Source of the DNA: Aplysia californica
Lineage: Eukaryota
Length of the DNA stretch: 64,000 nucleotides
Assembly: GCF_000002075.1 (NCBI RefSeq)
Contig: NW_004797284.1
Span: 2,010,327-2,074,326, forward strand
Direction: 5' to 3'
Part shown: piece after piece, positions 495 to 63,428 of the stretch
How positions within the stretch are numbered: the first letter of the stretch is position 1
Layout of the letters: every line of letters begins with the position of its first letter
The notes under the pieces: model-generated
What the model saw: the letters and a program-made list of their open reading frames with translations, nothing else
Told to the model about the DNA's origin: nothing
Database searches by the model: none
Position numbers and translations under genes: made by a program

Positions 495-1156
495 TTATTG
501 GGCGCGTCCGCCGAACTTTTCCCGGAAGCTGAAGGAGAAAGTGAGCATGTCGTAATAAAACTGCTTGGGGTCTCCGGCCGGGTATTTCTTCACGGATTTC
601 TTGACCCCCTGGGACAGCACCTCGTAGTGGGAGCCCTCGTTCAGAGCTGGGTCCACGAGGAAAGACCACCCCTCTCTGGGCTCCCTCAGGCGGATCAGCT
701 CGTTTCCGAAGGCGAAAGACCCCAGGTGCAGCTCACAGGTGGCGCCGGAGTAGGATTTGACGCGCTTCAGGTCACAGTTGACGCTCAGGTGGACTCTGGA
801 CACGGACATCAGGTCACCCTGGGAGAAAGCGATGACCTCACGGTTGAGCACCTGCTCGGGTCCGGCGACGTTGAAGAATGCGGTGTCCGGAGACCAGATG
901 TCGGTCCCGCCCACGTAGGCGCCTGAGATGTTGAGGCGGGCCTCGTTGAAGGTCAGGTCGGCGTCATGCCAGGTCTCTCTCTTCCACAGGATCACGCTCA
1001 CGCGGTTGTTGGCTGTGTCCATGTCCACCACGTTGATGTGAGTCACACGCACGTCCAGGTCGAGTGGGGCGGACTTCCGGGGCTGAGGGAAGGCATCGGT
1101 GATCTTTTCTTTGTTGAAGTTGGTGTAGAACTTCTTGTAGCGGCTTGCCTCAGCGC
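495..1156 (-). CDS. Gene A exon 2: AChBP-like soluble Cys-loop ligand-binding domain, divergent class; CDS complement(join(495..1156,3310..3352)), 234 aa
   Basis: Open frame with FPQP..PLD, IWSPD, C-x12-C (CDLKRVKSYSGATC), LGSF, YEVLS, YYD; stops after FSFREKFGGRAQ with no TM helix; acceptor ccgacAG|GC at the same position and phase as in B-G. Confidence 0.92.
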
Positions 1157-1206
1157 CTGTCGGATTATACACAGATGATTATTAGGGTAAATTGAGTGTC
1201 CTAACA

Positions 1207-1358
1207 CGGGGTTCCCACTACGGACGGGATCGGTCGATCGGGCCGATCACCCGACTCGATCGCCCGACTCGATCGCCTAAAAAAACAAACGTGTTTGTTT
1301 TCAGTTTCAGGCGATCGAGTCGGGCAATCGGCCCGATCCAGCCGTAGTGGGCACCCTG
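1207..1358. mobile_element. Small palindromic MITE in intron of gene A
   Basis: Inverted ends ggg(t/g)tcccactacgg / ccgtagtgggcaccctg followed by TA; second copy at 7181-7319. Confidence 0.7.
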
Positions 1359-1362
1359 TATA

Positions 1363-1693
1363 AGAATTAAGTGGCAGGATAGAATAAAGAATAAAAAGCT
1401 GTGGGGAAAGGACAGAAGAAAAGGATACAGAAGTAGAAGTAGGACTAAAAAAGTGGCGATGGATGGGACACACTCTCAGAAAGCCTAGCGGAAACATCAC
1501 AAGGCAGGCTCTGCAGTGGAACCCACAGGGAGCACGCGGCAGGGGTAGGCCACAGGAAACATGGAGGAGATGTGTGGAAAGGGACATGAGAGAGATGAAG
1601 CTCATTTGGAACGAGCTTTGAAGGATGGCCCAGGACAGAGATAAATGGAAGGGGTTTGAATGTGGCCTATACCCTGCCAATGGTGAGAAGCAT

Positions 1694-1746
<53 letters not shown>
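1363..1746 (+). mobile_element. RTE-type LINE 3' fragment with (TGA)n tail
   Basis: Translates to KKWRWMGHTLRKP..ITRQALQWNPQGARGRGRPQETWRR..AQDRDKW, typical RTE C-terminus. Confidence 0.8.
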
Positions 1747-1747
<1 letters not shown>

Positions 1748-2359
1748 GGACGGTAAATTGTCCAAGAAGGTCTTCCATTGTCGAACTTAAAAGAGATTTT
1801 CTTTGACAAGTGGACTCGGTGTGCAGTCATAATAATAATATAAAATAAAAGCTAAGGAATTTGAGAAATGATTGTTTGTACAGGTGTTTGAATTGGAAAG
1901 ACGTTCGTAAAAACATGATATTAGTAGAACGAACTGAAAACGTGGTATTTTGGGTTTGAATCTTTTGTTTTGTTTTGTTTTTTGCTGTTTTTACCTTAGG
2001 TTTTTAAAAATGTATATCACACACCCAGGTTCAATAGATGGCAACAGCCTTGCATTGCAAGCCAGGATGGTGATTTTTTATTTGTGAATGCTGTTTTTGC
2101 TTCTGTCTTCGTCTTCGGTACTGCTAGAATTCAGAACCTTACTTGACATGGTGAAGATAATTTAGCATGAGATAATATACTGTGCTCCTTGTCCAAACAC
2201 CAGGCTCAAAGGACACATCTCGAGTAGGAACATAACAAACATCATCTATGGAACCCCACTAAGGCTCAAACCTCAAACATACGCGTGGAACATAAAGTTA
2301 ATGATTTAAATGTTCGATAGTGGATGGTACACATTGGTCAGAGAGCGGAAAAACAAAAC

Positions 2360-3305
2360 AACAACAACTGCTACTTCAGAAGAAGACATTTCATATTGTT
2401 GCCATATTAATTTTAAGTCATGATTAACAATTAGCAATAAGAAATGAAATATTTCATCTGCATGCTACAATTTAGTCACCAATAGCTACTTCTACTTGTA
2501 AGAATGAAGACATTTCAACTGAATTAAACATCTTACAATAGACTATTACTACACATTTATAAGGAGATTTTTCATCTGAATATTTCATATCGCCATTAAC
2601 AACTTCTACGAAGATAAAATATAATTTATGTCCCGGCTACAAGTCACCATAAACTACTGGTAAAAAGAAACAGAATATTTCATATGATTTCTGCTTGTCA
2701 CAATTAACAACTAGTCAGAAGAAATAAACTATTTTATCTGAATTCAGCATGCCACCGTTGATTGCCCAGAACTACCACTTTAGAATTGTTTCTTTTCTGT
2801 GGATACTGCAAACTGTCACCTTTACATACTCAGAACTACCACTTTAGAATAAACTATTTCGTGTGCATGGAATATGCCACGATTCACTACTAAGTATAAC
2901 CACTTTGAAATAGACTATTTCAAGTGCATGTTGCAAAATGTCACTCAATACTACCATTTTAAAAGAAACTATTTCGTGTGCATGAAACATTTCACCATAA
3001 TTTTCTACTAAGTACTACAACTAATAAAAAATAAAATATTTCATGTGCTTGAAACATGTCACCATTTACTACTCAATACTATCATATTAAAAAAACTATT
3101 TCACATACATGCTACATGCGAACATTAACTCATACACCAACTAAGAAATAAACTATTTAAAGTGCATGAAACATGTCGCCAAGTACTATTCAGTACTGCC
3201 ACTTCAGAATAGACTTTTCATTCTACATGTCAGCATTGACTCATGCAACTACTTAGAAATAAACCCGTTTCATGTGCATGCTGCATGCAAACATTAACTC
3301 ATACA
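2360..3305. repeat. Degenerate tandem satellite, about 60-65 bp unit, about 15 copies
   Basis: Recurring actac(c)actt..agaa..aactatttcatgtgcatg..acatgtcaccatt. Confidence 0.7.
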
Positions 3306-3309
3306 GCAC

Positions 3310-3352
3310 CTGCAAAGGCCAGCATGAAACAGAGGAGAGAGAACCACGCCAT
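3310..3352 (-). CDS. Gene A exon 1: signal peptide MAWFSLLCFMLAFA(G)
   Basis: 43-nt coding exon ending G|GTGCTG, same length and phase as exon 1 of B-G; hydrophobic; TATATAAA about 57 nt upstream. Confidence 0.85.
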
Positions 3353-3408
3353 GATCCCGAGTCGTTGTGAGTCAACTTTCAACAGCCTCTGAGACCTCCG
3401 CTTTCTCG

Positions 3409-3416
3409 TTTATATA
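3409..3416 (-). promoter_or_regulatory. TATA box of gene A
   Basis: TATATAAA on the minus strand at similar spacing to the ATG as in the paralogues. Confidence 0.7.
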
Positions 3417-4414
3417 GACCTCTTCTCTTTTCTTCTCTCTTTTTATTCTGCACCTCGTTCTCCTCTGGCGTGGAATATCGCGCAGATAAGGCAGTGGTCG
3501 CATGCGAATAACCTTTATGGAATCTGTGCTTTCATGTCATGTAGCACAATGATATGTAGGGCAGTATGATATTCTCTCTCCAGCAAGTCCGAGGCATGTT
3601 ATCTCGTTAGGCATAAGATAGTTCTCAAGGGAAAGAAAAGAAAAATATCTTAGAACGGTTTGGGTTTGGAACTCGGACTATCCGCACCACAGCCTAATAT
3701 GATACCAAGGAGGAGAATATTGCACCAAGTACTTCACTGACGCCAAAATAATAATAATGATAATTATAATAGTAATATTTTTTTAATAATAAAGAAAATA
3801 ATAATATAAAGATAAAGAAAAAGATAATAGCTGTTAATTCATTATTATTTCATTATCATTATTATTAGATTATTAATATCATTATTATTTTATTTTTTAA
3901 AATTATAATTTTAAAATTTTTTAAATTTTTTAAATTTATTTATCAATTATTATTATTTTTTTACTACTATTATTATTTTTATTATTATTATTATTTCTTT
4001 GGTACAGTGCTATGTCCACATGTTTGTTTTGAGAAAAATGGATGTTAAGGGCAAACTGCTGTAGCTATTTCTTGGACATATGCACATGAAAAATAGCCAT
4101 TGTGGCCAACGTTCATAGTGGATTGTTTTGATAAATACTGGCATACCGCAACATCGATTGGAGGCATCTGTTATGCTTTTTCATAATTTGGGCCAGAATG
4201 GATATTGTCTCCTCAAGCTTTCAACTCACGTCAAATAACAACAACAACAACAACAACAACGACGACAATAACGACAACAACAACAATAAGTAAATGAATA
4301 GCAACCTTTCCCACCAAAGATTAGTAGGTCAGGCATTATCTAGACGCAGGTGTCAACGTCTAGATCCACAAGTCGCATCAAGCACGACGAACAATTATAA
4401 ATATCTGATAGAAA

Positions 4415-4850
4415 TGTGAGGCAGCGTGGTGGAATCAGGCTCTCGTCAATTTGGGGGCATGTAGAGATATTGGTATCATCTTAAAGTTTGTTCACTTGTC
4501 TTTATTTGGATGAAAAATAAATCCTTTTATCTTGAATACAAGTCGAGATATTTGCAAAAGAAGGAGGTGGGGGTCACTTGTTTTCAGAGGTAACATTAGT
4601 GAGAAAATGGCCGCCAAAGATTAGTTATTTCCTTAGCTTAAGTGTCCGTGGTAACTGAAAATTTACATTTTTGCACCTTCAATCAACGATTTTATTAAAA
4701 ATCCACACAGAAATGAGTTCTTTAATGGGCAAGAAAGGTGTTGAGCCAAAAAACAAAAATTTGATAAAAATTCAGAAACCATCGGAAAAAAGCAAGTTTC
4801 TTCACTTTGATGATTTTGACGAGAGCCTGATTCCACCACGCTGCCTCACA
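4415..4850 (+). mobile_element. MITE family 1 (about 435 bp, TGT..ACA ends, 35-bp TIR)
   Basis: tgtgaggcagcgtggtggaatcaggctctcgtcaa ... ttgacgagagcctgattccaccacgctgcctcaca. Confidence 0.9.
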
Positions 4851-7180
4851 TATCAATGATTTATTGAGAAACTGTATTCCATAAAGCCTTACTCCAAACA
4901 CAAACAAACTTGTTGCCAAGAAAATTTTGTTCCAAACACACAGCTCAGATTACACTGAAGGTTCTATCTAGGCCGAATTGGATACACACATTGTATATTA
5001 TGCCACAAAAGGACTGAATTTACCGTAAAATGGGCTTTTGTCTGACACATTTGATCTAAATGAAAATATAATAGTGCAAAACTAAGTTTCAAGTTATGAG
5101 CACTGGAAAAGTTTAATATTTTTTCATTCTGTAGTTTCTGAGAGTATTGATAGTGTTCGCCAAATTTGGCCTAAGCTCCATTATTAGTAAGATACGCTGA
5201 AAAACGAGATATTTTTAAAACAATGATATGAATTAATTAAATGAGACAAACTTTAAAATTATGACAAACAAATGCAAACCACTGTTTGCTCTTATTCTAG
5301 TTTGTCAGAGCCCCCCCCCCCTTAGCGCTCCCCAGAGCAGTTGAGTTTGGCAACCATGATCTAGAAAATGGCGGCTTGTTCCGGCGGTAATTTTTTCCCG
5401 CCGTTATCTCCCCTGTCCAGGGTCCATGGACCATGAGCAAGTGTCACTTTACGACTGTCTCCACAGTTTTTGCTGTTTTTTTTCTTCTTATTTTGTTTTT
5501 CACCCTGGTGTGGATAACGACCTCGTACTTACAAAAAATTGCTCTACTTTTACCGATTGTCTCTAGGGATGTGTTACTCACTGTTTTGTTTGCGCGCGTG
5601 TGTGTGGGTCTATTTTTTAAAGCAGTTATTGTCATGTGGGGCAAATAGGCTCAATGTAAGGGTTGTGACTTCGAGCACAATTTGTTGTTTTCCATCTTTG
5701 CACTGCTCAGACGCTGTGTCCTCACAGTTTGGCATGATGCTGCTATCTGGCAAAATGTTACGAAAGACATAATTAACACATGTATCGCAAACAATGGGCG
5801 CAGTGTGATAATCTGTCTGTCAGCCTTGAGAAAAAACATGTGGGTTTGATTTCCTCTAGATGCGAGGTATTCACTTACAGAGACTGCAGCTCTCGTCTGG
5901 GATATGTATCACCACAGGATGCTCGTTGGGTCAGACAAATAAGGCAGAAAAGGATCACCACAGGCTGCAACTATTAGATCTACAATTGAATCAATTTAGT
6001 GGGCATTGAAAACGTGTTGAAATAGATTCGCCCCACCTTTTACCCCAAAAAAAGCAACAACGAAACAAAACTAAACAAAATAGAACAGAACAAAACAAAA
6101 CAAGAAAAGCAAAAAAAAAACAAAACAAAAAACCAAAACAGAACCCCAAAAAGTCAAATGCCTGAAATCGTCTGATGAGAGAAAATGGTATGTCCAAAGT
6201 AAATAAATGTCCAAGCTTTCAAGGAATGTATCTAGCAAACAGCAACATTCCATGTAATAATATGGGGCACCAAGGCCTTCTAAGTAAGATATAGAATTGT
6301 GTAACTTTTCTGAAAATGGCGCTTAGATCTAGATCTATATCTTTGCAGATTTACACTTGAAAAAACCCCCACCAACAATAAAACAACCCCGCACAAATAA
6401 AATAAAGGTATATTATTTCTTTGAGAGATTATGACGAATGAAACGAAAAAGCTAAACCTCTGACCCCGGTACTCGACCAGCAAACGGAACACCCCCACTG
6501 GAATATGTGAGTCGTACCAAACTGTTCTTCTGATCTCTCCACGACTTATTTCCTTCTAAGTTGGACGACCGGGGGTGGGGGAGGGGGGGCAAGGGAAAGA
6601 CGCCTGGTAGGATTTTTTACTTTTGACAAAATGTATAACAAAACAGCGACCAAAAGAAAAACAAAAACAAAAAATGTTTTTTAAAGGAAGTGAAAGTATG
6701 TCAGCCAACATGATATTTATTTTTACTTTGACAAAATGTACAACGAAACAGCGACCAAAGGAAAAAACACAACATTTAAAAAAACGATGTGAAAGTATGT
6801 CAGCCGACATGAGAAAGCACCAAAAAAACCCCGTAATTGGAGATGTTTATACGCCAGCATTGACCCAGCTTAGGAAATGGAGGAGGCGGGCTGTCCTGGC
6901 CTTGTCTGACAGGGCCACCAACCCAGGCTGAGACGGAGANNNNNNNNNNNNNNNNNNNNNNNNNNNNNNNNNNNNNNNNNNNNNNNNNNNNNNNNNNNNN
7001 NNNNNNNNNNNNNNNNNNNNNNNNNNNNNNNNNNNNNNNNNNNNNNNNNNNNNNNNNNNNNNNNNNNNNNNNNNNNNNNNNNNNNNNNNNNNNNNNNNNN
7101 NNNNNNNNNNNNNNGACACACGGGAAAAGAACTCATGTTGCTGGCATGACGCTGAAAAACGCCAAACCGTTAAACGTTCT

Positions 7181-7319
7181 AAGGGGTGCCCACTACGGCT
7201 GGATCGGGCCGATCGCCGGACTCGGTTGTGTGGAACTGAAAACAAACACGTCTGTTTTTGAGGTGACCGAGTTTGGCGATCGGCCCGATCCGCAGATCCC
7301 ATCCGTAGTGGGCACCTTG
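7181..7319. mobile_element. Small palindromic MITE, copy 2 (opposite orientation to 1207-1358)
   Basis: gggtgcccactacgg ... ccgtagtgggcacc. Confidence 0.7.
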
Positions 7320-8238
7320 TATTACACCACACATTTGGGAGGAGCAAGGACACAGTGGGCCAGCCATAGGACCAGAGCCTCACGTGGACATCTACTGNNN
7401 NNNNNNNNNNNNNNNNNNNNNNNNNNNNNNNNNNNNNNNNNNNNNNNNNNNNNNNNNNNNNNNNNNNNNNNNNNNNNNNNNNNNNNNNNNNNNNNNNNNN
7501 NNNNNNNNNNNNNNNNNNNNNNNNNNNNNNNNNNNNNNNNNNNNNNNNNNNNNNNNNNNNNNNNNNNNNNNNNNNNNNNNNNNNNNNNNNNNNNNNNNNN
7601 NNNNNNNNNNNNNNNNNNNNNNNNNNNNNNNNNNNNNNNNNNNNNNNNNNNNNNNNNNNNNNNNNNNNNNNNNNNNNNNNNNNNNNNNNNNNNNNNNNNN
7701 NNNNNNNNNNNNNNNNNNNNNNNNNNNNNNNNNNNNNNNNNNNNNNNNNNNNNNNNNNNNNNNNNNNNNGGGGAGAGGAGTAGGTCAAGAACAGCAGAAC
7801 AGAATAACAGCACGAAGCCTTGACCCAGATATAAAGGATAAAATCTCACAGCTGGATGCAGCTCTCCTGAAACTGAACACGTAGACAGACAGATAGGACA
7901 ATCGCCACTGGAGGCAGAAAGTAATTAGTATGACTATGACTATTTTCTCGAGTGTGTATTTCTATACATAGCTGAATATCTTTGTTTGCTTGAGTTAAGA
8001 GAAACTCATCAACATAATAATGGTCTTATTATCACTCTCGTCCAAAACCATGCATGTTAATGATGTAATTAATGATGTAATTTGGGAACATCAAGAAGTG
8101 TACTTTAGCTAAAGGACTGTGGGGATGTCATTTACACCTCAAGATAGATCTAGATGGCTGTCAGTCATGGGAACACTAATGGTCACTGGAGTGGGCGGAG
8201 CTTGCACTTTTCCACTCGCACTGAAAAGTCTCGCAATT

Positions 8239-8666
8239 TGTGTCACGCCGTGGTGGAATCAGGCTCTCGTCAATTTTTGGACATATGGGTATCACTTTAA
8301 GGCCTGTTCATTTGTCTTGCTTTTGCTAAAAAAATTCCCCATCTGTGTTGAAAAGAAATCGAAATATTTGCGATTGAAGGATGCCAAGATTAGGCTGGTT
8401 TCAGAGATAAAATAAGCGAGAAAATGGCCGTCAAAGTTAGGTAATTTCCATAGCTTGAGAGTCCTTAGAAACTGAAAATAAGAACATTTTGGTGCCTTTA
8501 TAATCAATGTTTTCCCCAGTAAAATCCACACAGCAATGTGTTTTTAAATGTAATAGATGTTTCTTTAAAAAAAAAAATTGAAAACAAAACTAACAACCAC
8601 CAAACGGCCATAAAAATTGCAATATCTTTGATTTGATTATTTTGACGAGCGCATGATTTCATCACC
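8239..8666 (+). mobile_element. Older diverged relative of MITE family 1
   Basis: gtggtggaatcaggctctcgtcaa left end, collinear interior, degenerate right TIR. Confidence 0.65.
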
Positions 8667-8775
8667 AAGGAATAACACAAAGAGACAGGTTGGGAGGACA
8701 GACAACAGGAAGGCATGGGGTACCATGGTCGTCAATGGCTGAATGCTCCCACGCCTGATACCCCGAAGAATAAAA

Positions 8776-9172
8776 TGTGAGGCAGCGTGGTGGAATCAGG
8801 CTCTCGTTAATTTTTGGTCATGTAGAGTTATTGGTATTATCTTAACGCTTGTTCACTTGTCTTTATTTGGATGGAAAAAATATCCATTTATCTTGAATAC
8901 AAGTTGAGATATTTGCCAAAAGAACGATGTTGGGGTCACTTGCTTTCAGAGGTAAAATTAGTGAGAAATTGGCAGCCAAAAATTAGTTATTTCCTTTGCT
9001 TAAGAGTCCGTGGTAACTGAAAATTTACATAAATGAGTTCTTTAATGGGAATGAAAGGTGTTGAGCTAAATAAAACAAAAATTCGATAAAAATTCACAAA
9101 CCTGCGGAAAAATGCAAGTTTCTCCACTTTGATTATTTTGACGGGAGCCTGATTCCACCATGCTGCCTCACA
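8776..9172 (+). mobile_element. MITE family 1
   Basis: Both TIRs present; small internal deletion. Confidence 0.9.
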
Positions 9173-12462: not shown

Positions 12463-12899
12463 TGTGAGGCAGCGTGGTGGAATCAGGCTCTCGTCAATTT
12501 TTGGGCATGTAGAGTTATTGGTATTATCTTAAAGCGTGTTCACTTGTCTTTATTTGGATGGAAAAAAGATCCATTTATCTTGAATACAAGTCGAGATATT
12601 TGCGAAAGAAGGAGGTGTGGGTCACCTGTTTTCAAATGTAAAATAAGGGAGAAAATGGCCGCCAAAAATTAGTTATTTCCTTAGTTTAAGAGTCCGTGGT
12701 AACTGAAAATTTACATTTTTTGTGCCTGTAATCAATGTTTTTCAGAAAAAATCCACACAGAAATGAGTTGTTTAATTGGCATGAGAGGTGTTGAGCCAAA
12801 AAACAAAAATTTAAAAACAATTCACAAACTGCGTAAAAATGCAAGTTTCTTTACTTTGATTATTTTGACGAGAGCCTGATTCCACCACGCTGCCTCACA
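12463..12899 (+). mobile_element. MITE family 1
   Basis: Both TIRs intact. Confidence 0.9.
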
Positions 12900-27537: not shown

Positions 27538-27975
27538 TGTGAGGCAGCGTGGTGGAATCAGGCTCTCGTCAATTTTTGGACATGTAGAGTTATTGGTATC
27601 ATCTTAAAGCTTGTTCACTTGTCATTATTTTGATGAAAAAAATATCCATTTATTATCTTGAATACAGGTCGAAATATTTGCAAATGGAGGAGGTGAGGGT
27701 CACCTGTTTTCAGAGGTAAAATTAGTGCCAAAATGGCCACCAAAGATTAGTCATTTCCTTAGCTTAAGAGTCCGTGGCAACTGAAAATGTACATTTATTG
27801 TAACTTTAATCAAAGTTTTCAGAAAAATCCACACAGAAATGAGTTCTTTAATGGGCATGAAGGTGTTGAACCAAAAAACAAAAAATTAATAAAAATTCAC
27901 AAACCTGCAGAAAAATGCAAGTTTCTTCACTTTGATTATTTTTACAAGAGCCTGATTCCACCACAGTGCCTCACA
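27538..27975 (+). mobile_element. MITE family 1
   Basis: Both TIRs. Confidence 0.9.
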
Positions 27976-28297: not shown

Positions 28298-28704
28298 TGT
28301 GAGGCAGTGTGGTGGAATCAGGCTCTCGTCAATTTTTGAGCATGTAGAGTTTTTGGTATCATCTTAAAGCTTGTTCACTTGCTTGAGTACAAGTTGAGAT
28401 ATTTGCGAATGAAGGAGATGGTGTCGCCTGTTTTCAGACGTAGAATTAGTTAGAAAATGGCTGCCAAAGATTAGTTATTTCCTTAACGTAAGAGTCCGTG
28501 GCAAGTGAAAGTTTACATTTATTGTGCCTTTAATCAGCGTTTTTCAGAAAAATCCACACAGAAATTAGTTATTTAATGGGCATGAAAGGTTTTGAGCAAA
28601 AAAAACACAAAAATTTTATAAATATTCACAAACCTGCGGTAAAATGCAAGTTTCTTCACTTTGATTATTTTGACGAGAGCCTGATTCCATCACGCTGCCT
28701 CTCA
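28298..28704 (+). mobile_element. MITE family 1
   Basis: Both TIRs, internal deletion. Confidence 0.88.
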
Positions 28705-31085: not shown

Positions 31086-31093
31086 TATATAAA
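31086..31093 (+). promoter_or_regulatory. TATA box of gene D
   Basis: cagctgTATATAAAaagg. Confidence 0.75.
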
Positions 31094-31146
31094 AAGGTTG
31101 CAGTGTTCCCTGTATCTTCACCAACTCCCTCCAGAGATCAGGAACC

Positions 31147-31189
31147 ATGGCTCGCTTCATCCTTCTGTGCATCGCTCTCACGTTTGCTG
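31147..31189 (+). CDS. Gene D exon 1: signal peptide
   Basis: MARFILLCIALTFA(G), donor GTGAGA. Confidence 0.92.
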
Positions 31190-31534: not shown

Positions 31535-31975
31535 TGTGAGGCAGCGTGGTGGAATCAGTCTCTCGTCAATTTTTGGGCATGTAGAGTTATTGGTATCATC
31601 TTAAAGCTTGTTCACTTGTCTTTATTTCATTTGGATGCAAAAAAATATCTATTTGTCTTGAATACAAGTCGAGATATTTGCAAAAGAAGGAGGTGGGGGT
31701 CACCTGTTTTCAGAGGTAATATTAGTGAGAAAATGGCGCCAAAGATTAGTTATTTCTTTAGCTTAAGAGTCCGTGGTAACTGAAGATTTACATTTTTTAT
31801 GCCTTTAATCAACGCTTTTCAGAAAAATCCACACAGAAATGAGTTCTCTAATGGGCATGAAAGGTGTTGAGCCAAAAGACAAAAATTTAATAAAAATTCA
31901 CAAACTGCGGAAAAATGCAAGTTTTTTCATTTTGATTATTTTGACGAGAGCCTGATTCCACCACGCTGCCTCACA
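31535..31975 (+). mobile_element. MITE family 1 in intron of gene D
   Basis: Both TIRs. Confidence 0.9.
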
Positions 31976-32996: not shown

Positions 32997-33640
32997 GCGC
33001 CTCCTCGGCAAGCCGCTACAACGAACTGTACAACTGGGTCAGCGGAAAAGCCTCCCCAGGATTCCCCCAACCCGACGACTCCGGACCCCTGGATGTGGAC
33101 ATGCGTCTGACCAAATTGGATGTCGTTGATGTGGACAGTGCCAACAACCTGGTCACTTTGATTGCCAGAAGAAGGGTTCTGTGGGCTGACCGTAATTTGG
33201 CCTTTGACGAGGCCACGTACAACGTATCCTGTGTGTATGCTGCGGCCACCAACATCTGGACTCCTGACAGTACTTTCTACAACTCTGCTAGCCAGGAGCA
33301 TGTGTTGAACCGTGAGGTCATCGTCTTTGCCGGAGGTGAGTTGCTGGAAATTGAAAGAGTCCAGGTGTCCATCAACTGTGACCTGAGTGGTGTGAACACC
33401 TACACTGGCGCCACCTGCCACCTCCAACTTGGCTCCTACGGTTTGGGAAATGAGCTGTTCCATCTCAGGGAGCCCAAGGACAACTGGACCTTCCATCTGG
33501 AGTCGGCTTTCAACGGAGCCTCCCCCTACGAGCTTCTGTCTGGTGACGTCAGCAAATCTGTGGAGCCCTACGCTTCCGGTGACCCCGAGCAGTTCTATTA
33601 CGATGCTCTGACCTTCACCTTCAGCTTCAGAAGAAAGTAG
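32997..33640 (+). CDS. Gene D exon 2: AChBP-like domain; CDS join(31147..31189,32997..33640), 228 aa
   Basis: Same acceptor and motifs; ends FSFRRK TAG; AATAAA at 33851. Confidence 0.95.
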
Positions 33641-43068: not shown

Positions 43069-43076
43069 TATATAAA
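43069..43076 (+). promoter_or_regulatory. TATA box of gene E
   Basis: cagctgTATATAAAaagg. Confidence 0.75.
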
Positions 43077-43129
43077 AAGGTTGCAGCGTTCCCTGTATCT
43101 TCACCAACTCCCTCCAGAGACTAGGAACC

Positions 43130-43172
43130 ATGGCTCGCTTCATTCTTCTGTGCATCGCTCTCACGTTTGCTG
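43130..43172 (+). CDS. Gene E exon 1: signal peptide
   Basis: MARFILLCIALTFA(G), donor GTGAGA. Confidence 0.92.
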
Positions 43173-43482: not shown

Positions 43483-43683
43483 CAAAGATTGCACAATCTA
43501 ATGTGCACCCCCCCCCCCCAACNNNNNNNNNNNNNNNNNNNNNNNNNNNNNNNNNNNNNNNNNNNNNNNNNNNNNNNNNNNNNNNNNNNNNNNNNNNNNN
43601 NNNNNNNNNNNNNNNNNNNNNNNNNNNNNNNNNNNNNNNNNNNNNNNNNNNNNNNNNNCACCAGGGGAGGCTCGTCGGGCTAG

Positions 43684-43975
43684 AAAGAAGGAGGTGGGGG
43701 TCACCTGTTTTCAGAAATTACATTAGGGAGAAAATGGCCGCCGAAGAGTAGTTATTTCCTAAGCTTATGAGTTCGTGGTAACTGAAAATTTAGATTATTT
43801 GTGCCTTCAATCAACGTTTTTCAGAAAAATCCACACATAAATGAGTTCTTTAACGGGCATGAAAGGTGTTGAGACAAAAAAATTTGATAAAAATGCAGAA
43901 ACCTGCGGAAAAATGCAAGTTTTTCTTCACTTTCTTTATTTTGACGAGAGCCTGATTCCACCACGCTGCCTCACA
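43684..43975 (+). mobile_element. MITE family 1, partial, in gene E intron
   Basis: Interior plus right TIR; left part lost near N run. Confidence 0.8.
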
Positions 43976-45306: not shown

Positions 45307-45950
45307 GCGCCTCCTCGGCAAGCCGCTACAACGAGCTGTACAACTGGGTCAGCGGAAAAGCTTCCCCAGGATTCCCCCAACCCGACGACTCCGGACCCCT
45401 GGACGTGGACATGCGTCTGACCAAACTGGACATCGTTGGTGTGGACAGTGCCAACAACCTGGTCACTTTGATCGCCAGAAGAAGGGTTCTGTGGGCTGAC
45501 CGTGATTTGGCCTTTGACGAGGCCACGTACAACGTGTCCTGTGTGTATGCTGCGGCCACCAACATCTGGACTCCTGACAGTACCTTCTACAACTCTGCTA
45601 GCCAGGAGCAGGTGTTGAACCGTGAGGTCATCGTCTTTGCCGGAGGTGAGTTGCTGGAAATTGCCAGAGTCCAGGTCAGCATCAACTGTGACGTGAGTGG
45701 TGTGAACACCTACACTGGCGCCACCTGCCACCTCCAACTTGGCTCCTACGGTTTGGGAAATGAGCTGGTGCGTCTGAGGGAGCCCAAGGACAACTGGACC
45801 TTTCATCTGGAGTCGGCTTTCAACGGAGCCTCTCCCTACGAGCTTCTGTCTGGTGATGTCAGCAGATCTGTGGAGCCCTACGCTTCCGGTGACCCCGAGC
45901 AGCATTACTATGATGCCCTGACCTTCACCTTCAGCTTCAGAAGGAAGTAG
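45307..45950 (+). CDS. Gene E exon 2: AChBP-like domain; CDS join(43130..43172,45307..45950), 228 aa
   Basis: Same acceptor and motifs; ends RRK TAG; AATAAA at 46149; intron contains an N run. Confidence 0.94.
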
Positions 45951-51134: not shown

Positions 51135-52028
51135 AATGTGCCTTAAGACTGTTGTCATCATATTTAAAAGAACAGTAAATGCAGATTTTACAATTTTACA
51201 TGAGAGCCACCCCCTCCAAAAAAAGCAACAAAAAAAGTAAAAAAGCATCAACCCAACAACAAACTGGCAAGTTGTTACCCCGAAAGCAAACTCTTTGCAA
51301 ACATCCCAAGTCAATATTTTCAAAAATACAAATTTGAAAACAACCCTCTTATTATTATCTTTAAGCAAATTAATGTTGTCTCCTTGGTAGCAGTATTCAT
51401 TTGTTGCTTTTTTTTTTGGGGGGGGGGTTGTGGGCTCTCCTGTAAAATTATACAAACTTTATATACTGTTATATACTTTTATAAATGGCAGTAGAATAGC
51501 GCTTAATAGGCCTAGTGACAATAGCGAACTCATACTTTCCATTCGCATATCCCTCTCTCGATAAGCAGTAATCAGCATTGACCTTAAAACTCATAGCAAT
51601 TTATCTTTCCAACGCCTGCCCACGAAAGATATAGCATAGATACACACAAAAACTTGAAAGAGGAAAGAAATCTAGAAAACAGATGATTGCAGAACATATC
51701 CCAGAAGAGACATCAAAATGTGCTCGGAAATTAAATGATAAGTGAAAATTCCAGACATGATGTAAATAAGAACAAGTTTGGTTTATTTCAGGGAATCCAA
51801 ATGGAAACGTGTAAACATAAAACATGAGATTTGACTTTTGGTAAATTTTAGCAGACTCTGAAATAATATTCTGAACAATGCAGAGACCAACAATTGCATG
51901 TTCTGTCCCTAATTCGGAACGTACTTTCTGCAACAGGGGAGACAATTGCAACACATTTTACCATCCAAACAAACAGTCGCTGAGAGTCAATAATGGAGCA
52001 AACAGGAGTTGATCAACCCACCCCAGAT

Positions 52029-52684
52029 TTACTGACCACCCCACTTCCTTCTGAAGCTGAAGGTGAAGGTCAGGGCATCGTAGTAGTGCTGCTCGGGGTC
52101 ACCGGAAGCATAGGGCAACACAGATCTGCTGACGTCACCAGACAGAAGCTCGTAGGGGGAGGCTCCGTTGAAAGCCGACTCCAGATGGAAGGTCCAGTTG
52201 TCCTTGGGCTCCCTCAGACGGACCAGCTCATTTCCCAAACCGTAGGAGCCAAGTTGGAGGTGGCAGGTGGCGCCAGTGTAGGTGTTCACACCACTCAGGT
52301 CACAGTTGACGCTGACCTTGACTCTTTCAATTTCCAGCAACTCACCTCCGGCGAAGCCGATGACCTCACGGTTCAAAACCTGCTCCTCACTTATCGAGTT
52401 GTAGAAACTGCTGTCAACAGTCCAGATGTTGGTGGCCGCCAGATACACACAGGACACGTTGAACTTGGCCTCGTCATAAGCCAGATTACGGTCAGCCCAC
52501 AGCACCCTTCTCCTCACGATCACACTCACGATGTTGTTGGCACTGTCCACTCCGACCACGTCCAGTTTGGTCAGACGCATGTCCACGTCCAGGGGTCCGG
52601 AGTCGTCGGGTTGGGGGAAGGCTGGGGAGGCTCTTTCTCCGAACCAGTTGTACAGCTCATTGTAGTGGCTTGCCGCGGAGGCGC
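52029..52684 (-). CDS. Gene F exon 2: AChBP-like domain, inverted copy; CDS complement(join(52029..52684,53351..53393)), 232 aa
   Basis: Acceptor ccacAG|GC; WTVD variant; C-x12-C; ends RRKWGGQ; AATAAA at 51782-51787 (minus). Confidence 0.94.
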
Positions 52685-53350: not shown

Positions 53351-53393
53351 CAGCAAACGTGAGAGCGATGCACAGAAGAATGAAGCGAGCCAT
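53351..53393 (-). CDS. Gene F exon 1: signal peptide
   Basis: MARFILLCIALTFA(G) on minus strand, donor GTGAGA. Confidence 0.92.
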
Positions 53394-53445
53394 GGTTCCT
53401 GATCTCTGGAGGGAGTTGGTGAAGACACAGGGAACTGCAGCATCC

Positions 53446-53454
53446 TTATATATA
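53446..53454 (-). promoter_or_regulatory. TATA box of gene F
   Basis: cagctgTATATATAAgg on minus strand. Confidence 0.75.
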
Positions 53455-56567: not shown

Positions 56568-58444
56568 NNNNNNNNNNNNNNNNNNNNNNNNNNNNNNNNN
56601 NNNNNNNNNNNNNNNNNNNNNNNNNNNNNNNNNNNNNNNNNNNNNNNNNNNNNNNNNNNNNNNNNNNNNNNNNNNNNNNNNNNNNNNNNNNNNNNNNNTT
56701 ATAAATATTAATTATTATTGTTTATTTATTTACTTACTTTTTAATGATATCATCAATACTGTTACTGTTGTCATGATCATAAAAGTAAAGTTGTTCCTGC
56801 ATCCGATCCGGACATGGGTATTGCCTTGTTAGTGAGACAACGTCCTGGGCCTACGGCATATTGTGGTAGGGTGGCCAGTTCCCTTCCACGCGGCCTTTAC
56901 TTCCCCAACTCTAAGTCAGGTACCCATTACTGCTGGGTGGGCAGGGGGGGGGGCGAAAAAAAACCGAGGCTCGAACCCGGACTTTCCGCTTCGGAGACGA
57001 GCTCACTAACCGCTCCGCCCCTGCACCCTCGTCATGATCTGAATTATTGATAATAGTAGGTACAAAAAATCAGAAGTGTTTTTTTGTTTGTAAAACTAGT
57101 TATGTAGGAGTGTTTTATAACCCACAAACACCATTTAGATCATTTAGGAGGCGGGCTTCCCTCCCTGCTTGTCAAGGCCAATAAGGTCTGAGAGGTATAC
57201 AATATCCCAGCAAAAAGACCGGGACTCAATAAGATATTTACTCCACTCGAGAATCGAACTTGGATCTCTTGCTGTATGCCAAGCAGAAAGCGTGCTACGC
57301 CACAGATGCCAGTGTAAAAATAAGAATGCGATATCGATGACATCAATAACATTAGTGTAATAAAAGCAATAATAATATTAATATTGGAAATAGAGATACC
57401 AATAATTATAAAATCAGTGTAGGATTTTCATNNNNNNNNNNNNNNNNNNNNNNNNNNNNNNNNNNNNNNNNNNNNNNNNNNNNNNNNNNNNNNNNNNNNN
57501 NNNNNNNNNNNNNNNNNNNNNNNNNNNNNNNNNNNNNNNNNNNNNNNNNNNNNNNNNNNNNNNNNNNNNNNNNNNNNNNNNNNNNNNNNNNNNNNNNNNN
57601 NNNNNNNNNNNNNNNNNNNNNNNNNNNNNNNNNNNNGTGGGGTCAACGTTTGCATCACTCTTTAGAAGAAACCACACACCATTCAGAACTCAAAATTTAA
57701 ACAATTACTGTAACGGTCGATATTCTTTGTATCCTGACTGAGCTGGATACGTATTATTTCGAGTGCAGGAATTCATCAAAAGGTTGGTTTTGGTCGCGTT
57801 GTATCGTTGTATAATACCCCAGAAGTTTTAGTTTTAGTTTTAGTAGAGGTTTTACGGCGCTCGCAACTGCATAAGGTCATATGAGCGCCAGAAGATTAGA
57901 GGTGTTACAAGAGAGTAATGAACATAAAAAAAAGAAGGGGAGATAAGGACGATAGATGTTTGATAGGAAAGAAGAAGCAAACCGCACCAGAGCACCCGCC
58001 AACCACCCACATCCCCCAGAACTGAGCTATTTGGTTTCATATTTCTCTTTTACATAATCTTGACGTCCGGTGTTTGGCGTAGTGTCAAGCTTGGGGAGAT
58101 TAAAGAAAAGGGGAATTCCCAAGGCAGTAGCAGACAGGAGTGTTAGATGAGGCTCACAGTGTCATGTGTGTGTGTGTGTGTGTGTGTGACACGATGTGTG
58201 GGTGGGTGGTCAATAGAGTGTTTGTTTTAGTAGAGGTTTTACGGCGATTGCAACTGCATAAGGTCATATGAGCGCCAAAAGATTAGATGTGTTACAAGAG
58301 AATATAAAACATAAAAAGAAGGAAGGGAGATAAGGACGATAGATCTATGTTTGATAGGAAAGAAGAAGCAGCGTGTCCACTACAAGTTAATACAATTCTA
58401 TTATAACATCATTAAGGTTTTTTTAAACTCTCAAATAGATTGGC

Positions 58445-58625
58445 TTCTGATTTTTTCTTCATTCAGCATTAATTTACTTTTCCCCCATCCATTTTTTCCA
58501 CTCTTTCAATGCATTTCTCGACTCTTTCTATGAATTCATCGGTGTCGCATGGATGAAAAGAGCCATACATCTGGGTGTCATCGGCATAGAAATGGTAGCT
58601 GAGTTGATACTTTCGTATTTCTACA
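58445..58625 (-). mobile_element. L2/CR1-type reverse transcriptase fragment
   Basis: IRKYQLSYHFYADDTQMY..VEKCIERVEK.WM..KLMLNEEK. Confidence 0.75.
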
Positions 58626-59143
58626 GCCTTAAAAAAAATACCCCCCCCCCAAAAAAAAAACCCATCCCGTGGCTAACGGCAATGCTGTGTCAGTAGTCTT
58701 TGTCTATGATACTCTGTGTGACTAATTCACTCATGTATGGTCGCTATAACGTCAAGGAGAGTTTTCTCTATAACCAAACAAATATACACACCAATGAAAC
58801 CAAACTTCTCCTATAGGTAGGGCAATGCCCACTTTTCGTGAAGGTTAAGATTTCTGGAAACCGCCGATATCTGGGTTAGCCCGCTTGTCCTTTAAACGCA
58901 ACCATATAAAGTACACGTATTTATGTTTTTCTGTACGCCTCTGTAACCAACAAAAACAAACAAACAAAAAACAAGCCAAAGGAATCAATTATTATAAGAA
59001 ACCTACTTTTTTTTCTTAAAAAAAAACAAAACAATTTTAGTAGATGCAATTGCAAAGATGCTGTGTCAGAAAAAAGAACAAGAAAAAGGTCAAGGAAAAC
59101 CAGAAGAAAGAGAAGAACAAGAACAAGAACAAGAACAAGAAGT

Positions 59144-59670
59144 GGGGCTCTCGTGGCCTAGAGGTTAAGGTGTTGGCCTCTCATTCAAACGTCCCGGGTT
59201 CGAATCCGGATAGCGACTGAAAATTTTTCTTCTCTAAAATTGTCTCCTTTCACATCCTTTCCTGCTCTCTAGCAATGTTCTATCGTCTTCTTTCGTCGCC
59301 ACTTTCTGCTCCCACCCCCTCACCTCCTAAGCCACCTCCTCTGGGCTCCTGACTCTTTCTGCAGCCTTTCTACTTCTTCTCCTTGGTTCCTCCTTGCTGC
59401 TGTCTTTCTGCCACACCCCTGATCTTCTGGTAGGAAAGATCTACAGCAGCAGCTAGCCTTCTTGGGCATGGGCGAAAAATCTCGGAGGTCCCGTGTGCAT
59501 GTTGCGCACGTTAAAGATCCCTTGGTGGTCTAAAATAGATAAGATTAGGCTTCGGCCGCCACCCGGACAGAATTCAAAATTTCCTATTAACTGAAAATGT
59601 TTAATGTTACCCCGCGCTCATATGACGGTATGCAGTTGCGAGCGCCGTAAAACATTTCCCAAAAATAAAA
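59144..59670 (+). mobile_element. tRNA-derived SINE family 2, full length
   Basis: A box tggcctagagg, B box ggttcgaatcc, gaggtcccgtg..cacgttaaagatccc domain, tail catatgac..tatgcagttgcgagcgccgtaaaac also scattered at about 22195, 23545, 46540, 49812, 57848, 58233. Confidence 0.8.
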
Positions 59671-61412
59671 GAGAACAAGAAACGTGTACCTTTTTTCATT
59701 TTCTTCCTGCTGTCGATGAGTTTGAGATTTGATTTGTTCTTCAACAGACATGCAATAGCTTTACGCATGACGAAACATTAAGCGTTTCTTTCTTACGGTG
59801 GCACTCATAGGTCGCTGTATTTCTGATGTAGGCTTAAGAATCCGCCACTGGCTAAACGGCTTTGTTCTCCTGTCTAAATCGTTCACTGGTCTTTTCCCAA
59901 TGTTAGACCAAGCACAATGTTTTATACGGATGATAAGAAAAATAACATAATACAGAACACTTCAAACTTTGTGAAGATTAATAACTCAATTAATTAATGA
60001 CATTATTACGAAATTAATGGCTAGTTGAGATTATTAAAAAATAGAGAAGGGTTGAAAACAAAATTGAAAAGTAAATTATTGAAAATATCATAGTCAAAGC
60101 TGATTGCCTTCTTAATGATCTAATTTGTATCGATGGAGCCGTAAAAAAATTCACAATTGCACATTCTAAAGAGAGGTTCGCACTCATTTCTATTGGACCA
60201 ACGAGGTCGCATAAAATGTGTGTGAAATGTTTTCCATAATTTGCTTGAAAGACTAAGTTCGCACTGCCTACTCCTACTTCCCGCTATGTAGGTCACCACG
60301 TGACGCCCCACAACATGCATCAGAATATCATGTTCAGATGTGGCCGTGGTCACTTGGCAGTAAGAAGTAGAGCACTGAGTTGACAAACTATAAGAATACT
60401 CTCTAGATATCTCCCCCCCCACCCCCCACCCCCCACCCCAGTTACGCCCACAATTTCTTCCAAACATTTCAAGTTTTGTTTCGTTTTGTTTCGTTTTGTT
60501 TTTGGTTTTTTTCTACTGTGTGTACAATCAGGAGAAACCAAGCTGGGAGTGTCAGCTGACATGTCCTCCAACTGTTGAAACAAATTCCTAACCCCCTCCC
60601 CCCCCCCCCCTGCCAAAAAAAGAAAACAATAATAAGAAACAGAAACAGCCTTTGTTTATTCACTTATTTATGTATATATTTATTTATGTATTTATGTATA
60701 TATGTATTGTTAAAAAATTGATTTATTGATTGGTTGATTGATTCATTCATTAGTTGATTTATAATTTATGTATTCTTTTATTTTTTAAATTTATTTATTT
60801 GTAAACTCGTACGGCTGAAAAGGGAAATAAACAGTTCATCGCATAAACAATATCCGTGAGTTCCTGTGCGTCGTCAAATTCCAACACAATAGCACGAAAT
60901 AGAAATGTGGGAAAGGAAAAAAAAACAACCAAAAACAAAACAACAAAACAAAACGAGCGAGTGTGAGAGGCCATACCCTGGCGAGTCGTCAGTACCTCTG
61001 TGTCGCCACACGTAGCGTTGTGGGTCAGTGCAGCAAGGAAGGGGAGTGTGACCTTGCCCCAGATGTCCTTATGTAAGTCTTACACCGCTCTTCATTACAG
61101 CCATGTCACAAGGCACCTCTATGTTATCTCTAGGATGTCTTACATTAACGGAAAAATGAGAAAAAAGAAAACACAAAACAAAACAAAACAAAGAGACTTA
61201 AACAGGGCAAAAAAGGCAACGAGCTCCAAAAAAAAACAAAAAAACAAAACAACCCCACAACATCAACAACCAACAACCAACCACCAACCCACCAACCAAA
61301 CAAAACCAATTCACTCGATAAGTAGGATATCAGAACAACAAAAAAATCAGAAGGAGGTTAGTTAAAAAAAAACACAGGAACTGGCAAGTTATTCGAGGGT
61401 GAGGGGCACCTG

Positions 61413-61419
61413 TATATAA
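61413..61419 (+). promoter_or_regulatory. TATA box of gene G
   Basis: cacctgTATATAAcg; upstream sequence differs from B-F. Confidence 0.7.
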
Positions 61420-61471
61420 CGTGTACGGCCATCTCTGTATCTTCACCAACTCCCTCCAGACACCAGGAACC

Positions 61472-61514
61472 ATGGCTCGCTTCATCCTTCTGTGCATCGC
61501 TCTCACGTTTGCTG
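61472..61514 (+). CDS. Gene G exon 1: signal peptide
   Basis: MARFILLCIALTFA(G), donor GTGAGG. Confidence 0.92.
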
Positions 61515-62059
61515 GTGAGGCATTTTGTATTCATGAACATTAATTTTTTAAAATGTTAAATTCTGATTTTTAACAAATTTAATATTTATTATCATTTTTG
61601 AGAGTGTCTTTTTTTGTGGTTTTTATAATTGTCTATTGTGTCCTCTTTTTTCATTTAGGCTAGAACATAAAGCTTTTGGAAACGTCCCCAGCAGCACAAC
61701 TTGTGTTTTTTTAAATTCGAGAATGTTGTTACTAATTGAACACAGTCCTTTACTTTTGAAGCGAAAGTTATTTTTACGCCGACGTAGGATTCCATAGTTG
61801 CAGACGTTATAAAATGGCAACCATTACTTTCTCCACTTTTGTCATTTTGAGGCGTTAGAATAAAGTGTAATTCTGAAACCTTTCTTAAGCTGCATATTAT
61901 ACAAAAATTGTGGACTACAATTATGTACTACACGAGACACACTCAATGCCTGGTTCAGCTGGCGGTGTTAAGCTCCTTAATTTATACACGTTCTAGAGTA
62001 ATATACATACAGGAATATATGTAATAATAATAATAATGATGATGATGATAATAATTAAA

Positions 62060-62302
62060 TAATAAACAGCACTTGTATAGCGCATAACCCCGTTCGACAG
62101 CAAGCTCTATGCGCTTTACACTATCTTTTTACCCCAGCAGACCATAGAACACTCAGAAACATTCTCAGATTCTTAGAAAGCATTTAGCGTAAGCCCTTAA
62201 ACATAACAAAACTGACAAGATCTTCCACTGTCTATAGCCGGGTACCCATTTTCATCTGGGTGAAGTGAGGAAAATTCATGTGAAGTGCCTTTCCCAAGGA
62301 CA
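62060..62302 (-). mobile_element. SINE family 1, 5'-truncated, in gene G intron
   Basis: Matches middle and tail of 54508-54837 in reverse. Confidence 0.75.
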
Positions 62303-62772
62303 GTAGCTCCGTTTGTATATATACATGTATGTGTCTTCTTTTTTCTTTCCACTCCTTTTCTTATTTTGACCATCGTGAAAAGGTTTGTCTCACTGCCTTA
62401 CTTGATCAAAACGGTGTCTTGTCTTGTATTTTCTGATGACGTCAGGGTTTAGTGACTTTCCTACACACGAGCTAACCTGAGTCTGGAAGTCCCCAAGCAT
62501 CAAAGAAACAACGGTGTCCAAAGGTTCTTCAATTCCACCGCGACTAACTCATTGGCTCTACTGCACACGTATCTAAGTGCCCCTAGAACATTTCCAAAAC
62601 AGCTGTGACAATTTCAGAGGTGCAAAATGTACTTGTGGACACAAGTCCCCAAAACATCTCCAAAATCACCACTCATTTTGCTTCTGTACTTGTCTATAAA
62701 GGTCACTGAAACATCGACGAAAGGTTTCTCAAATTTCATTTTTACATAATATTGTCCTCCTCATCCCCCCAG

Positions 62773-63428
62773 GCGCCTCCTCGGCAAGCCGCTACAACGA
62801 ACTGTACAACTGGGTCAGCGGAAAAGCCTCCCCAGGATTCCCCCAACCCGACGACTCCGGACCCCTGGATGTGGACATGCGTCTGACCAAACTGGACATC
62901 GTTGGTGTGGACAGTGCCAACAACCTGGTCACTTTGATCGCCAGAAGAAGGGTTCTGTGGGCTGACCGTGATTTGGCCTTTGACGAGGCCACGTACAACG
63001 TGTCCTGTGTGTATGCTGCGGCCACCAACATCTGGACTCCTGACAGTACCTTCTACAACTCTGCTGGCCAGGAGCAGGTGTTGAACCGTGAGGTCATTGT
63101 CTTTGCCGGAGGTGAGCTGCTGGAAATTGCCAGAGTCAAGGTCAGCATCAACTGTGATGTGAGTGGTGTGAACACCTACACTGGCGCCACCTGCCATCTC
63201 CAACTTGGCTCCTACGGTTTGGGAAATGAGCTGTTCCATCTGAGGGAACCCAAGGACAACTGGACCTTCCATCTGGAGTCTGCTTTCAATGGAGCCTCCC
63301 CCTACGAGCTTCTGTCTGGTGACGTCAGCAAATCTGTGGAGCCCTACGCTTCCGGTGACCCCGAGCAGTTCTATTACGATGCCCTGACCTTCACCTTCAG
63401 CTTCAGAAGAAAGTGGGGCGGTCAGTAA
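62773..63428 (+). CDS. Gene G exon 2: AChBP-like domain; CDS join(61472..61514,62773..63428), 232 aa
   Basis: Same acceptor and motifs; ends RRKWGGQ; AATAAA at 63676. Confidence 0.95.

Follow-up and report, generated by a model that had tools for sequence, protein, structure and literature searches.

AChBPs (acetylcholine-binding proteins) are the usual stand-ins for nicotinic receptors in structural work, and what they do in nature is debated. A stretch of 64,000 nucleotides of the Aplysia californica genome (contig NW_004797284.1, positions 2,010,327 to 2,074,326; G000:C14:2010327-2074326), hereafter the window, carries a series of genes for soluble, AChBP-like proteins and raises the question of what such a series binds and what purpose it serves. 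We think it likely that the window contains seven of eight tandem paralogues from an AChBP branch that appears specific to Aplysia, in which the ligand pocket has been rebuilt and the products are secreted in bulk as a scavenger or carrier. A first-pass annotation, made from the letters of the window, had called seven intact two-exon genes here and read them as an amplified, secreted binding system. We followed these calls through the window and through the genome, which was searched as a 927-Mb assembly of 4332 contigs.

A six-frame open reading frame (ORF) list placed seven paralogous open frames of 181-225 aa at the positions named by the first-pass annotation and in the orientations it gave (A-, B+, C+, D+, E+, F-, G+, with A and F inverted), and the ORF list, matches to the Pfam family PF02931 and our exon models all agree on seven intact two-exon genes (Table 1). 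Each gene has a TATA box and two exons separated by a phase-1 GT..AG intron: one of 43 nt for the putative signal peptide, and a large one that holds the ligand-binding domain and ends in a stop. The encoded pre-protein is 228-234 aa long (228, 232 or 234 aa in RefSeq). In genes B-G the 43 coding nucleotides of exon 1 comprise the ATG, 13 more codons (MARFILLCIALTFA) and one base of the next codon, followed by a donor of the GTGAG type; this exon-1 pattern, with an identical 29-nt start, was matched upstream of six copies, with zero matches expected by chance. The exon 2 acceptor is pyrimidine rich (...CCCCAG, with GC as the first exon bases) and in matching phase, giving the junction ...TFA-G-ASSASRY. 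The TATA motif lies 59-65 nt 5' of the ATG in every copy, and about 130 nt around it, covering the promoter and the 5' untranslated region (5'UTR), are conserved among copies in the promoter alignment. Introns range from 531 to 2153 nt, that of E being 2134 nt with an estimated gap included. Gene A is the divergent copy, 52% identical to G and of the same two-exon build; its first exon was missed by similarity to the other first exons and was recovered as a hydrophobic ATG-to-GT segment in the right phase.

Further copies in adjacent sequence, which the first-pass annotation had thought worth looking for, proved to include an eighth intact gene, H, which starts 11 kb past the window end (G000:C14:2085470-2086141; L001:2492-3142, + strand), is 90% identical to G and equals RefSeq XP_012940595.2. 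Since H belongs to the same array, the window cuts that array, and genes A-G together with H occupy about 75 kb of one A. californica scaffold. The 10 kb upstream of the window and the 11 kb past H contained no more copies, and the ORFs there gave only a sub-threshold sulfatase match and low-complexity matches. All eight genes are already in RefSeq as 'acetylcholine-binding protein(-like)', with A entered as 'neuronal acetylcholine receptor subunit alpha-10', and for A, B, C, E, F, G and H our gene models agree exactly with the RefSeq proteins. The RefSeq protein for D (P0001, XP_035826863.1, 249 aa) begins inside the intron and is without a signal peptide; a conserved TATA box and first exon (31147-31189) are present in gene D, unused by that model, and the 5' end of RefSeq gene D is probably mis-modelled. 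The searchable literature yielded no paper on the array or on its pocket or function; the one trace there is a mention of A. kurodai AChBP cDNAs (PMC4165275), and two Aplysia transcriptome papers make no mention of AChBP.

By sequence, the products of the array are predicted to be secreted, soluble proteins that consist of the ligand-binding domain only. Searches were made with single exons, and the full-length forms are the database proteins that these searches returned. All seven large exons pass the Pfam profile Neur_chan_LBD (PF02931) with 39.8-66.1 bits against a cut-off of 26 (E 4e-10 to 4e-18), the matches cover about positions 18-215 of the 216 in the profile, and no other family was matched. 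In a six-frame search of the whole genome, the channel domain Neur_chan_memb (PF02932) gave 147 matches, only one of which lies on the array scaffold, about 118 kb away and non-significant (E 0.39), so that both Pfam outcomes are those that the first-pass annotation had predicted. Among solved structures, Aplysia and Lymnaea AChBP match best (E ~4e-19). An AlphaFold2 (AF2) model of gene G (pLDDT 90.1, pTM 0.85) has an N-terminal helix and ten strands, and its top Foldseek matches are Lymnaea (Ls-) and Aplysia (Ac-) AChBP chains at template-modelling (TM) scores of 0.81-0.84.

All eight array copies have the Cys-loop pair, Cys127 and Cys140, which hardly varies across the family alignment. The loop itself (C-DVSGVNTYTGAT-C) is hydrophilic, with 12 residues between the cysteines as in AChBPs; channel subunits have 13 residues there and a hydrophobic motif that contacts the channel domain. 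A stop follows directly after the last strand in all copies, as it does in the A. kurodai entry described below, and the hydrophilic C-x12-C loop without transmembrane segments that had been read from the window thus stands on both the loop sequence and the conserved stop. Copies B-H carry a third, unpaired cysteine, Cys78, which aligns with Asp77 of Ac-AChBP, a residue that we take to lie on the complementary face, and which gene A does not have; B-H also have two N-glycosylation motifs and a calculated pI of ~4.7, and A a pI of 7.95. The C-termini read FRRK-TAG in B, D and E, FRRKWGGQ (four codons on) in C, F, G and H, and ...FREKFGGRAQ in A. Thus B, D and E have TAG (19413-19415, 33638-33640 and 45948-45950) where C, F, G and H have TGG, the tail segments of the TGG copies C, F and G being 25450-25464, 52029-52043 and 63414-63428, and the tail in B, D and E is shorter by the four residues WGGQ. 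This split does not follow the protein tree, in which E and G are nearest relatives yet differ, and its distribution points to gene conversion or to mutation that has recurred. Several residue patches shared between copies likewise cut across the tree.

Purifying selection acts on the copies, which are real paralogues and neither haplotypes nor pseudogenes. Pairs among B-H have dS of 0.11-0.25 and dN/dS of 0.12-0.38 with no frame break, and the coding regions of the units are 83-95% identical in DNA. Units resemble one another only over about 0.7-0.9 kb at and near exon 2 and 0.1-0.2 kb at and near exon 1; apart from dispersed repeats, the remaining introns and spacers cannot be aligned. Of the 14 runs of N in the window none touches an exon, and the sole intragenic one, at 43523-43658, interrupts the intron of gene E, the rest being intergenic. 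The linkage of the two exons of E therefore spans a gap and is not read from contiguous sequence, the RefSeq E protein using the same two exons; distances between genes also cross unfilled gaps and are estimates. In run X1, a 2022 sequencing run with the behaviour of DNA, the unique intron of G has a depth of 44-53 and exon 2 one of 180-580, as expected of a multi-copy exon. The collapse of the copies to one or two loci, which the first-pass annotation had raised as a danger, is thus not seen by divergence or by depth, and its intact, amplified array of channel-less AChBP-related genes holds, with stops in place and exons free of gaps. Its suggestion of a 'diversified' system found no such support: the dN/dS values are those of purifying selection, though copy C has a rewritten loop-C tip.

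The array is transcribed, at least at G and F. Four sequencing runs (X4, X9, X21 and X1) were mapped on window positions 61000-64000. A contig from run X4 contains a joint from 61513 to 62772 that skips 1258 nt with GT..AG borders, which is exactly the predicted G intron and thus the predicted splice junction in a run whose nature as RNA is guessed. Word depth in this run is ~3,000 on exon 1, 51,000-196,000 on exon 2 with all paralogues summed, and ~0 on unique parts of the intron; the 'high-dose' product envisaged earlier fits the extreme depth on exon 2. A further X4 contig (63441-63867) continues through the 3'UTR of G, with AATAAA 248 nt past the stop, and in X4 no joint leads from exon 2 to anything downstream, so that the transcripts onto downstream transmembrane exons that had been thought of as a counter-case do not appear there. 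Run X9 is 3'-biased, its coverage being confined to the 3'UTR and the final 300 nt of exon 2. Loose ends in both X4 and X9 match the gene F 3'UTR (51977-52006), and one X4 loose end matches a paralogue on another scaffold (C713a); taken with the G joint, several paralogues are therefore co-transcribed.

The pocket was compared by mapping residues onto Ac-AChBP numbering through alignments. Several aromatic residues persist: loop A Tyr93 is kept in B-H (Phe in A), as are both loop C tyrosines, Tyr188 and Tyr195. The remaining positions are changed. Loop B Trp147 is Tyr in B-H and Phe in A and in the two C713 copies; the vicinal disulfide of loop C, Cys190-Cys191, is replaced by Ser-Gly, by Tyr-Asn in C and by Ala-Gly in A; loop C is three residues longer, its tip in gene C reading LYNAPAQ in place of ASGDPEQ; and in loop D Tyr55 has become Arg in B-H and Trp in A, and Gln57 has become Arg. 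The loop-B Trp makes a cation-pi contact with acetylcholine, and among 108 relatives it is kept in 94 and the Cys pair in about 70, with Arg at position 55 in just 3. In GlyR, GABA-A and GluCl receptors, loop B has Tyr or Phe and an Arg on the beta-2 strand (loop D) faces the pocket.

Relatives elsewhere in the genome, found by protein search, are looser: two copies on scaffold C713 (57-60% identical), two on C727 (39%) and one on C255 (33%). A further pair on scaffold C569, 31-34% identical in the same search, comprises the classical Ac-AChBP and a close second copy (L004:2404-3066 and L008:2278-2940, about 10 kb apart on opposite strands, one reading ...HYSCCPEPYIDVNLVVKFRERRAGNGFFRNLFD). 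Both retain Trp147 and the vicinal cysteines, and the classical AChBP is itself duplicated in the A. californica genome. Against 1.84 billion cluster representatives, HMMER returned only one cluster below E 1e-30, represented by the 'soluble LGIC-like protein B' of A. kurodai and, at 50% identity, also covering the A. californica copies; the next matches are at most 39% identical and include, among the named ones, the C255 paralogue, Pleurobranchaea AChBP, and Elysia, Physella and Bradybaena proteins. Four of the AChBP-like proteins of the land snail Bradybaena similaris (P0030, P0146, P0033 and P0147) have the neighbouring locus tags BsWGS_22695, 22696, 22701 and 22702, and heterobranch gastropods may often have genes for soluble receptor domains clustered in tandem.

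A tree of 45 sequences places the window genes in one clade with the C713 and C727 copies (SH-aLRT, a Shimodaira-Hasegawa-like approximate likelihood ratio test, 99), nested in a larger clade (98) with C255 and four unnamed metagenomic sequences, and the classical Ac-AChBP pair forms a separate clade with A. kurodai AChBP (SH-aLRT 100). The phylogeny that the first-pass annotation had recommended thus sets the array apart from classical AChBP, and by sequence relationship the array genes represent a distinct branch that appears to be Aplysia-specific. Its further view, that the array serves something other than classical acetylcholine buffering, agrees with the altered pocket and with the classical genes of intact pocket on another scaffold. 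At the node joining B-H and A. kurodai, the A. californica copies may be monophyletic by the approximately unbiased (AU) test (p 0.146, no rejection), and the B-H duplications may have come before or after the split from A. kurodai.

Taken together, these results suggest that the soluble receptor-domain scaffold was here turned to a different ligand or task, with the acetylcholine-binding residues discarded and purifying selection kept. By homology, the products would assemble as AChBPs do, into rings of five subunits that bind ligand where neighbouring subunits meet. Acetylcholine and nicotinic ligands would be unlikely physiological ligands, because the cation-pi Trp and the loop-C disulfide are lost. 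The proteins would be made in bulk by a particular tissue and would act as a scavenger or carrier rather than as a synaptic buffer; bulk secretion is suggested because the array is multi-copy, its TATA promoters are conserved and depth is very high in one run. Amino-acid-gated pockets have a similar pairing of Tyr or Phe in loop B and an Arg on the complementary strand, and the ligand might by analogy be a small molecule with a carboxylate or another electronegative group, a guess that we regard as rather doubtful because cation-capable aromatics remain and Arg57 is common in nicotinic-type proteins. The fuller version of this idea, a soluble pentamer whose pocket has converged on the amino-acid-gated design and captures a carboxylate small molecule such as a free amino acid or transmitter, a pheromone or a dietary algal neuroactive amino acid, strikes us as unlikely. 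If true, it would mean a natural soluble 'non-cholinergic AChBP' that could be a structural surrogate for a different ligand class, and one that could neutralise an algal amino acid in a seaweed grazer.

Several points weigh against the reading of the array as a bulk-secreted binder with a rebuilt pocket. The exon 1 peptide, a hydrophobic 14-residue stretch followed by small residues (AGA/SS), was judged a signal peptide by eye. Arg or Lys stands at position 57 in 37 of the 108 relatives, and so is common in nicotinic-type proteins and not diagnostic of an anionic ligand, and the retained loop A Tyr and both loop C tyrosines could hold a cation. A predicted-complex job with three copies of G scored 0.01, which is evidence neither way on the oligomer. 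Run X4 is taken as RNA by guess only, and its exon 2 depths permit no assignment to a single gene. Run X21, which is certain poly-A RNA, has no reads on the exons, and expression is therefore tissue-restricted.

What else the array could be depends largely on the pocket and on the reality of the copies. The pentamer might have lost small-ligand binding altogether and serve as a structural, mineral-binding or immune-recognition scaffold in haemolymph or secretion, as might be imagined from the 60-subunit dodecahedron that AChBP forms in the haemolymph of Biomphalaria and from the citation of the oyster shell protein ACCBP as a biomineralisation protein (PMC3423370). The odd Cys78 of B-H could link subunits or pentamers, and the very high abundance would suit such a role; B-H and the A. 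kurodai relative show strong conservation of the pocket (the Arg pair and the tyrosines in loops A, B and C), and with the low dN/dS this is what would be expected of a maintained binding site, which argues against a ligand-free role and leaves it improbable. The Aplysia shell is vestigial and internal, and a role in the shell is therefore unlikely. With a subunit of about 70 kDa against ~24 kDa here, haemoporin was set aside as a candidate; it is an abundant Aplysia haemolymph protein cited in PMC3423370. That the genes are ordinary acetylcholine-buffering AChBPs, from glia or other cells and merely in many copies, would account for their RefSeq names, for their best solved relatives being AChBPs and for the kept tyrosines of loops A and C. 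It would also suit the A. kurodai AChBP cDNAs, which were cloned from the central nervous system and are cited as a 'manuscript in preparation' (PMC4165275), work from which the soluble LGIC-like entries of that species may also come. We nevertheless give it only a small chance: the array has replaced a loop-B Trp that most relatives keep, has no vicinal Cys pair, a longer loop C and an Arg at the loop-D aromatic position; another scaffold has two classical genes of intact pocket that share only 28-32% identity with the window genes; and the exons have no reads in the poly-A run X21, whose sample is named only by code.

Two further explanations fare worse. Uncollapsed haplotypes, a mis-joined scaffold or decaying duplicates might be suspected from 14 gaps in 64 kb and from the high identity of the coding DNA. 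The dS values lie far above allelic divergence, however, dN/dS and the unbroken frames speak against decay, introns and intergenic DNA are unalike between units, two genes are inverted, unique intron and exon 2 differ in depth in the DNA-like run X1, and transcripts of G, F and C713a can be told apart, so that an artefact is very improbable. The open frames could instead be the first exons of full-length receptor genes, with channel exons farther off or hidden in gaps, which could conceal short exons; the RefSeq name of A, a nicotinic acetylcholine receptor (nAChR) subunit alpha-10, would fit. Yet an in-frame stop ends all eight copies and the A. kurodai entry, PF02932 is not found near the array, the Cys loop has no hydrophobic channel-contact motif, the RNA contigs run into the 3'UTR with no joint out of exon 2, and RefSeq's own model of A ends with a stop after the last strand, at no more than 234 aa. 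We therefore consider full-length receptors here to be barely credible. Both the name 'acetylcholine-binding protein' and the name 'nAChR subunit alpha-10' are probably misleading for the array genes.

Table 1. Coordinates of the array genes and associated features in the window (position 1 is its first nucleotide; CDS, coding sequence)
Feature	Position	Strand	Details
Gene A TATA box	3409..3416	-	62-64 nt upstream of ATG; promoter alignment
Gene A exon 1 CDS	3310-3352	-	MAWFSLLCFMLAFA + 1 nt (G), donor GTGCTG; RefSeq P0148 starts with the same peptide
Gene A exon 2	495-1156	-	ligand-binding domain and stop; acceptor 1157/1156; PF02931 E 6e-15
Gene B TATA, 5'UTR and exon 1	17596..17703	+	TATA 17596-17604, CDS 17661-17703
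Gene B exon 2	18772-19415	+	213 codons, ends RRK-TAG; identical to RefSeq P0006
Gene C TATA, 5'UTR and exon 1	24174..24277	+	CDS 24235-24277
Gene C exon 2	24809-25464	+	217 codons; identical to RefSeq P0009
Gene D TATA, 5'UTR and exon 1	31086..31189	+	CDS 31147-31189
Gene D exon 2	32997-33640	+	213 codons
Gene E TATA, 5'UTR and exon 1	43069..43172	+	CDS 43130-43172
Assembly gap in gene E intron	43523..43658		N-run scan
Gene E exon 2	45307-45950	+	213 codons; identical to RefSeq P0010
Gene F exon 1, 5'UTR and TATA	53351..53454	-	CDS 53351-53393, TATA 53447-53454
Gene F exon 2	52029-52684	-	217 codons; identical to RefSeq P0003
Gene G TATA, 5'UTR and exon 1	61413..61514	+	TATA 61413-61418, CDS 61472-61514; covered in run X4
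Gene G intron	61515..62772	+	1258 nt, GT..AG, phase 1; joint in run X4
Gene G exon 2	62773-63428	+	217 codons + stop; identical to RefSeq P0008
Gene G 3'UTR	63429..63700 (end approximate)	+	AATAAA ~248 nt after stop; contigs 63389-63682 and 63441-63867
Dispersed repeat of ~245 nt, eight copies	4560-4804, 12609-12853, 13887-14131, 20801-21045, 27687-27931, 28411-28655, 31686-31930, 43688-43932

Between and within the genes the window also holds repeats and stray open frames. A repeat of ~245 nt is dispersed in eight copies, 60-77% identical, through the spacers and introns of the array (Table 1). Another dispersed repeat, at ~62010-62312 in the G intron and at 63828-64000 just past the 3'UTR, has huge depth in every run (up to ~800,000 words) and is found on both strands in poly-A RNA too. 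An ARAGORN scan of the window found no tRNA that would mark the high-depth repeats as tRNA-derived; the element is probably SINE-like (short interspersed element). An ORF at 14194-14787 (+), between A and B, has a sub-threshold zf-RVT match (E 9e-5) and is likely a retrotransposon remnant. In the gene A intron, the open frame at 1201-1830 (-) includes a run of 17 His from a CAT/CAC microsatellite, has no Pfam match and is probably not a gene.

The species that supplied one of the two classical AChBPs also has a separate eight-gene array of strongly transcribed relatives. Finding the ligand would bear on why molluscs produce such proteins in bulk, and its identity could yield a soluble model protein for a non-cholinergic pocket. 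Compared with Ac-AChBP itself ('soluble acetylcholine receptor', e.g. PDB 2BYN), the array proteins are likewise of secreted type by prediction and confined to the ligand-binding domain, with an N-terminal helix and beta sandwich (the AF2 model aligns at TM 0.83), the same hydrophilic C-x12-C Cys loop, an N-glycosylation motif at the equivalent NxS/T (position 75/76), and a single large coding exon whose acceptor lies just past the signal peptide. They differ in low identity and in falling in another well-supported clade, in the exchanges Trp147 to Tyr/Phe, Cys190-Cys191 to Ser-Gly, Tyr55 to Arg and Gln57 to Arg, in the longer loop C, in the extra unpaired Cys78 of B-H, and in eight tandem copies against two. 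Much closer is the A. kurodai 'soluble LGIC-like protein B' (BAO57803.1 / X5I1Z0; 232 aa), which is 88% identical to G and 91% to C and has a near-identical signal peptide (MARFLLLCIALTFAG), the same architecture and the same pocket residues. It differs in coming from another species and is a database entry for which no paper was found in the searchable literature; it is the orthologue or co-orthologue of B-H.

Outside Aplysia the nearest relatives reach no more than 39% identity to the window genes, and the parallels are looser. BgAChBP1/2 of Biomphalaria glabrata and the ACCBP of Pinctada, both homologous to AChBP, occur in abundance outside the nervous system and have been proposed to play non-synaptic roles (PMC3423370); they belong to other gastropod and bivalve lineages, and are likened to the array by description. 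Both the array and the cephalopod chemotactile receptors are, it seems fair to say, lineage-specific tandem expansions of a nicotinic-type domain that have given up the acetylcholine pocket. The cephalopod proteins, however, are full membrane channels in the sensory cells of suckers whereas the Aplysia proteins are soluble and channel-less; the parallel drawn by the first-pass annotation is an analogy only. With GlyR, GABA-A and GluCl receptors the array shares the pocket signature and has no close phylogenetic tie, the window genes lying inside the AChBP/nicotinic branch, and the likeness to amino-acid-gated receptors would be convergent.

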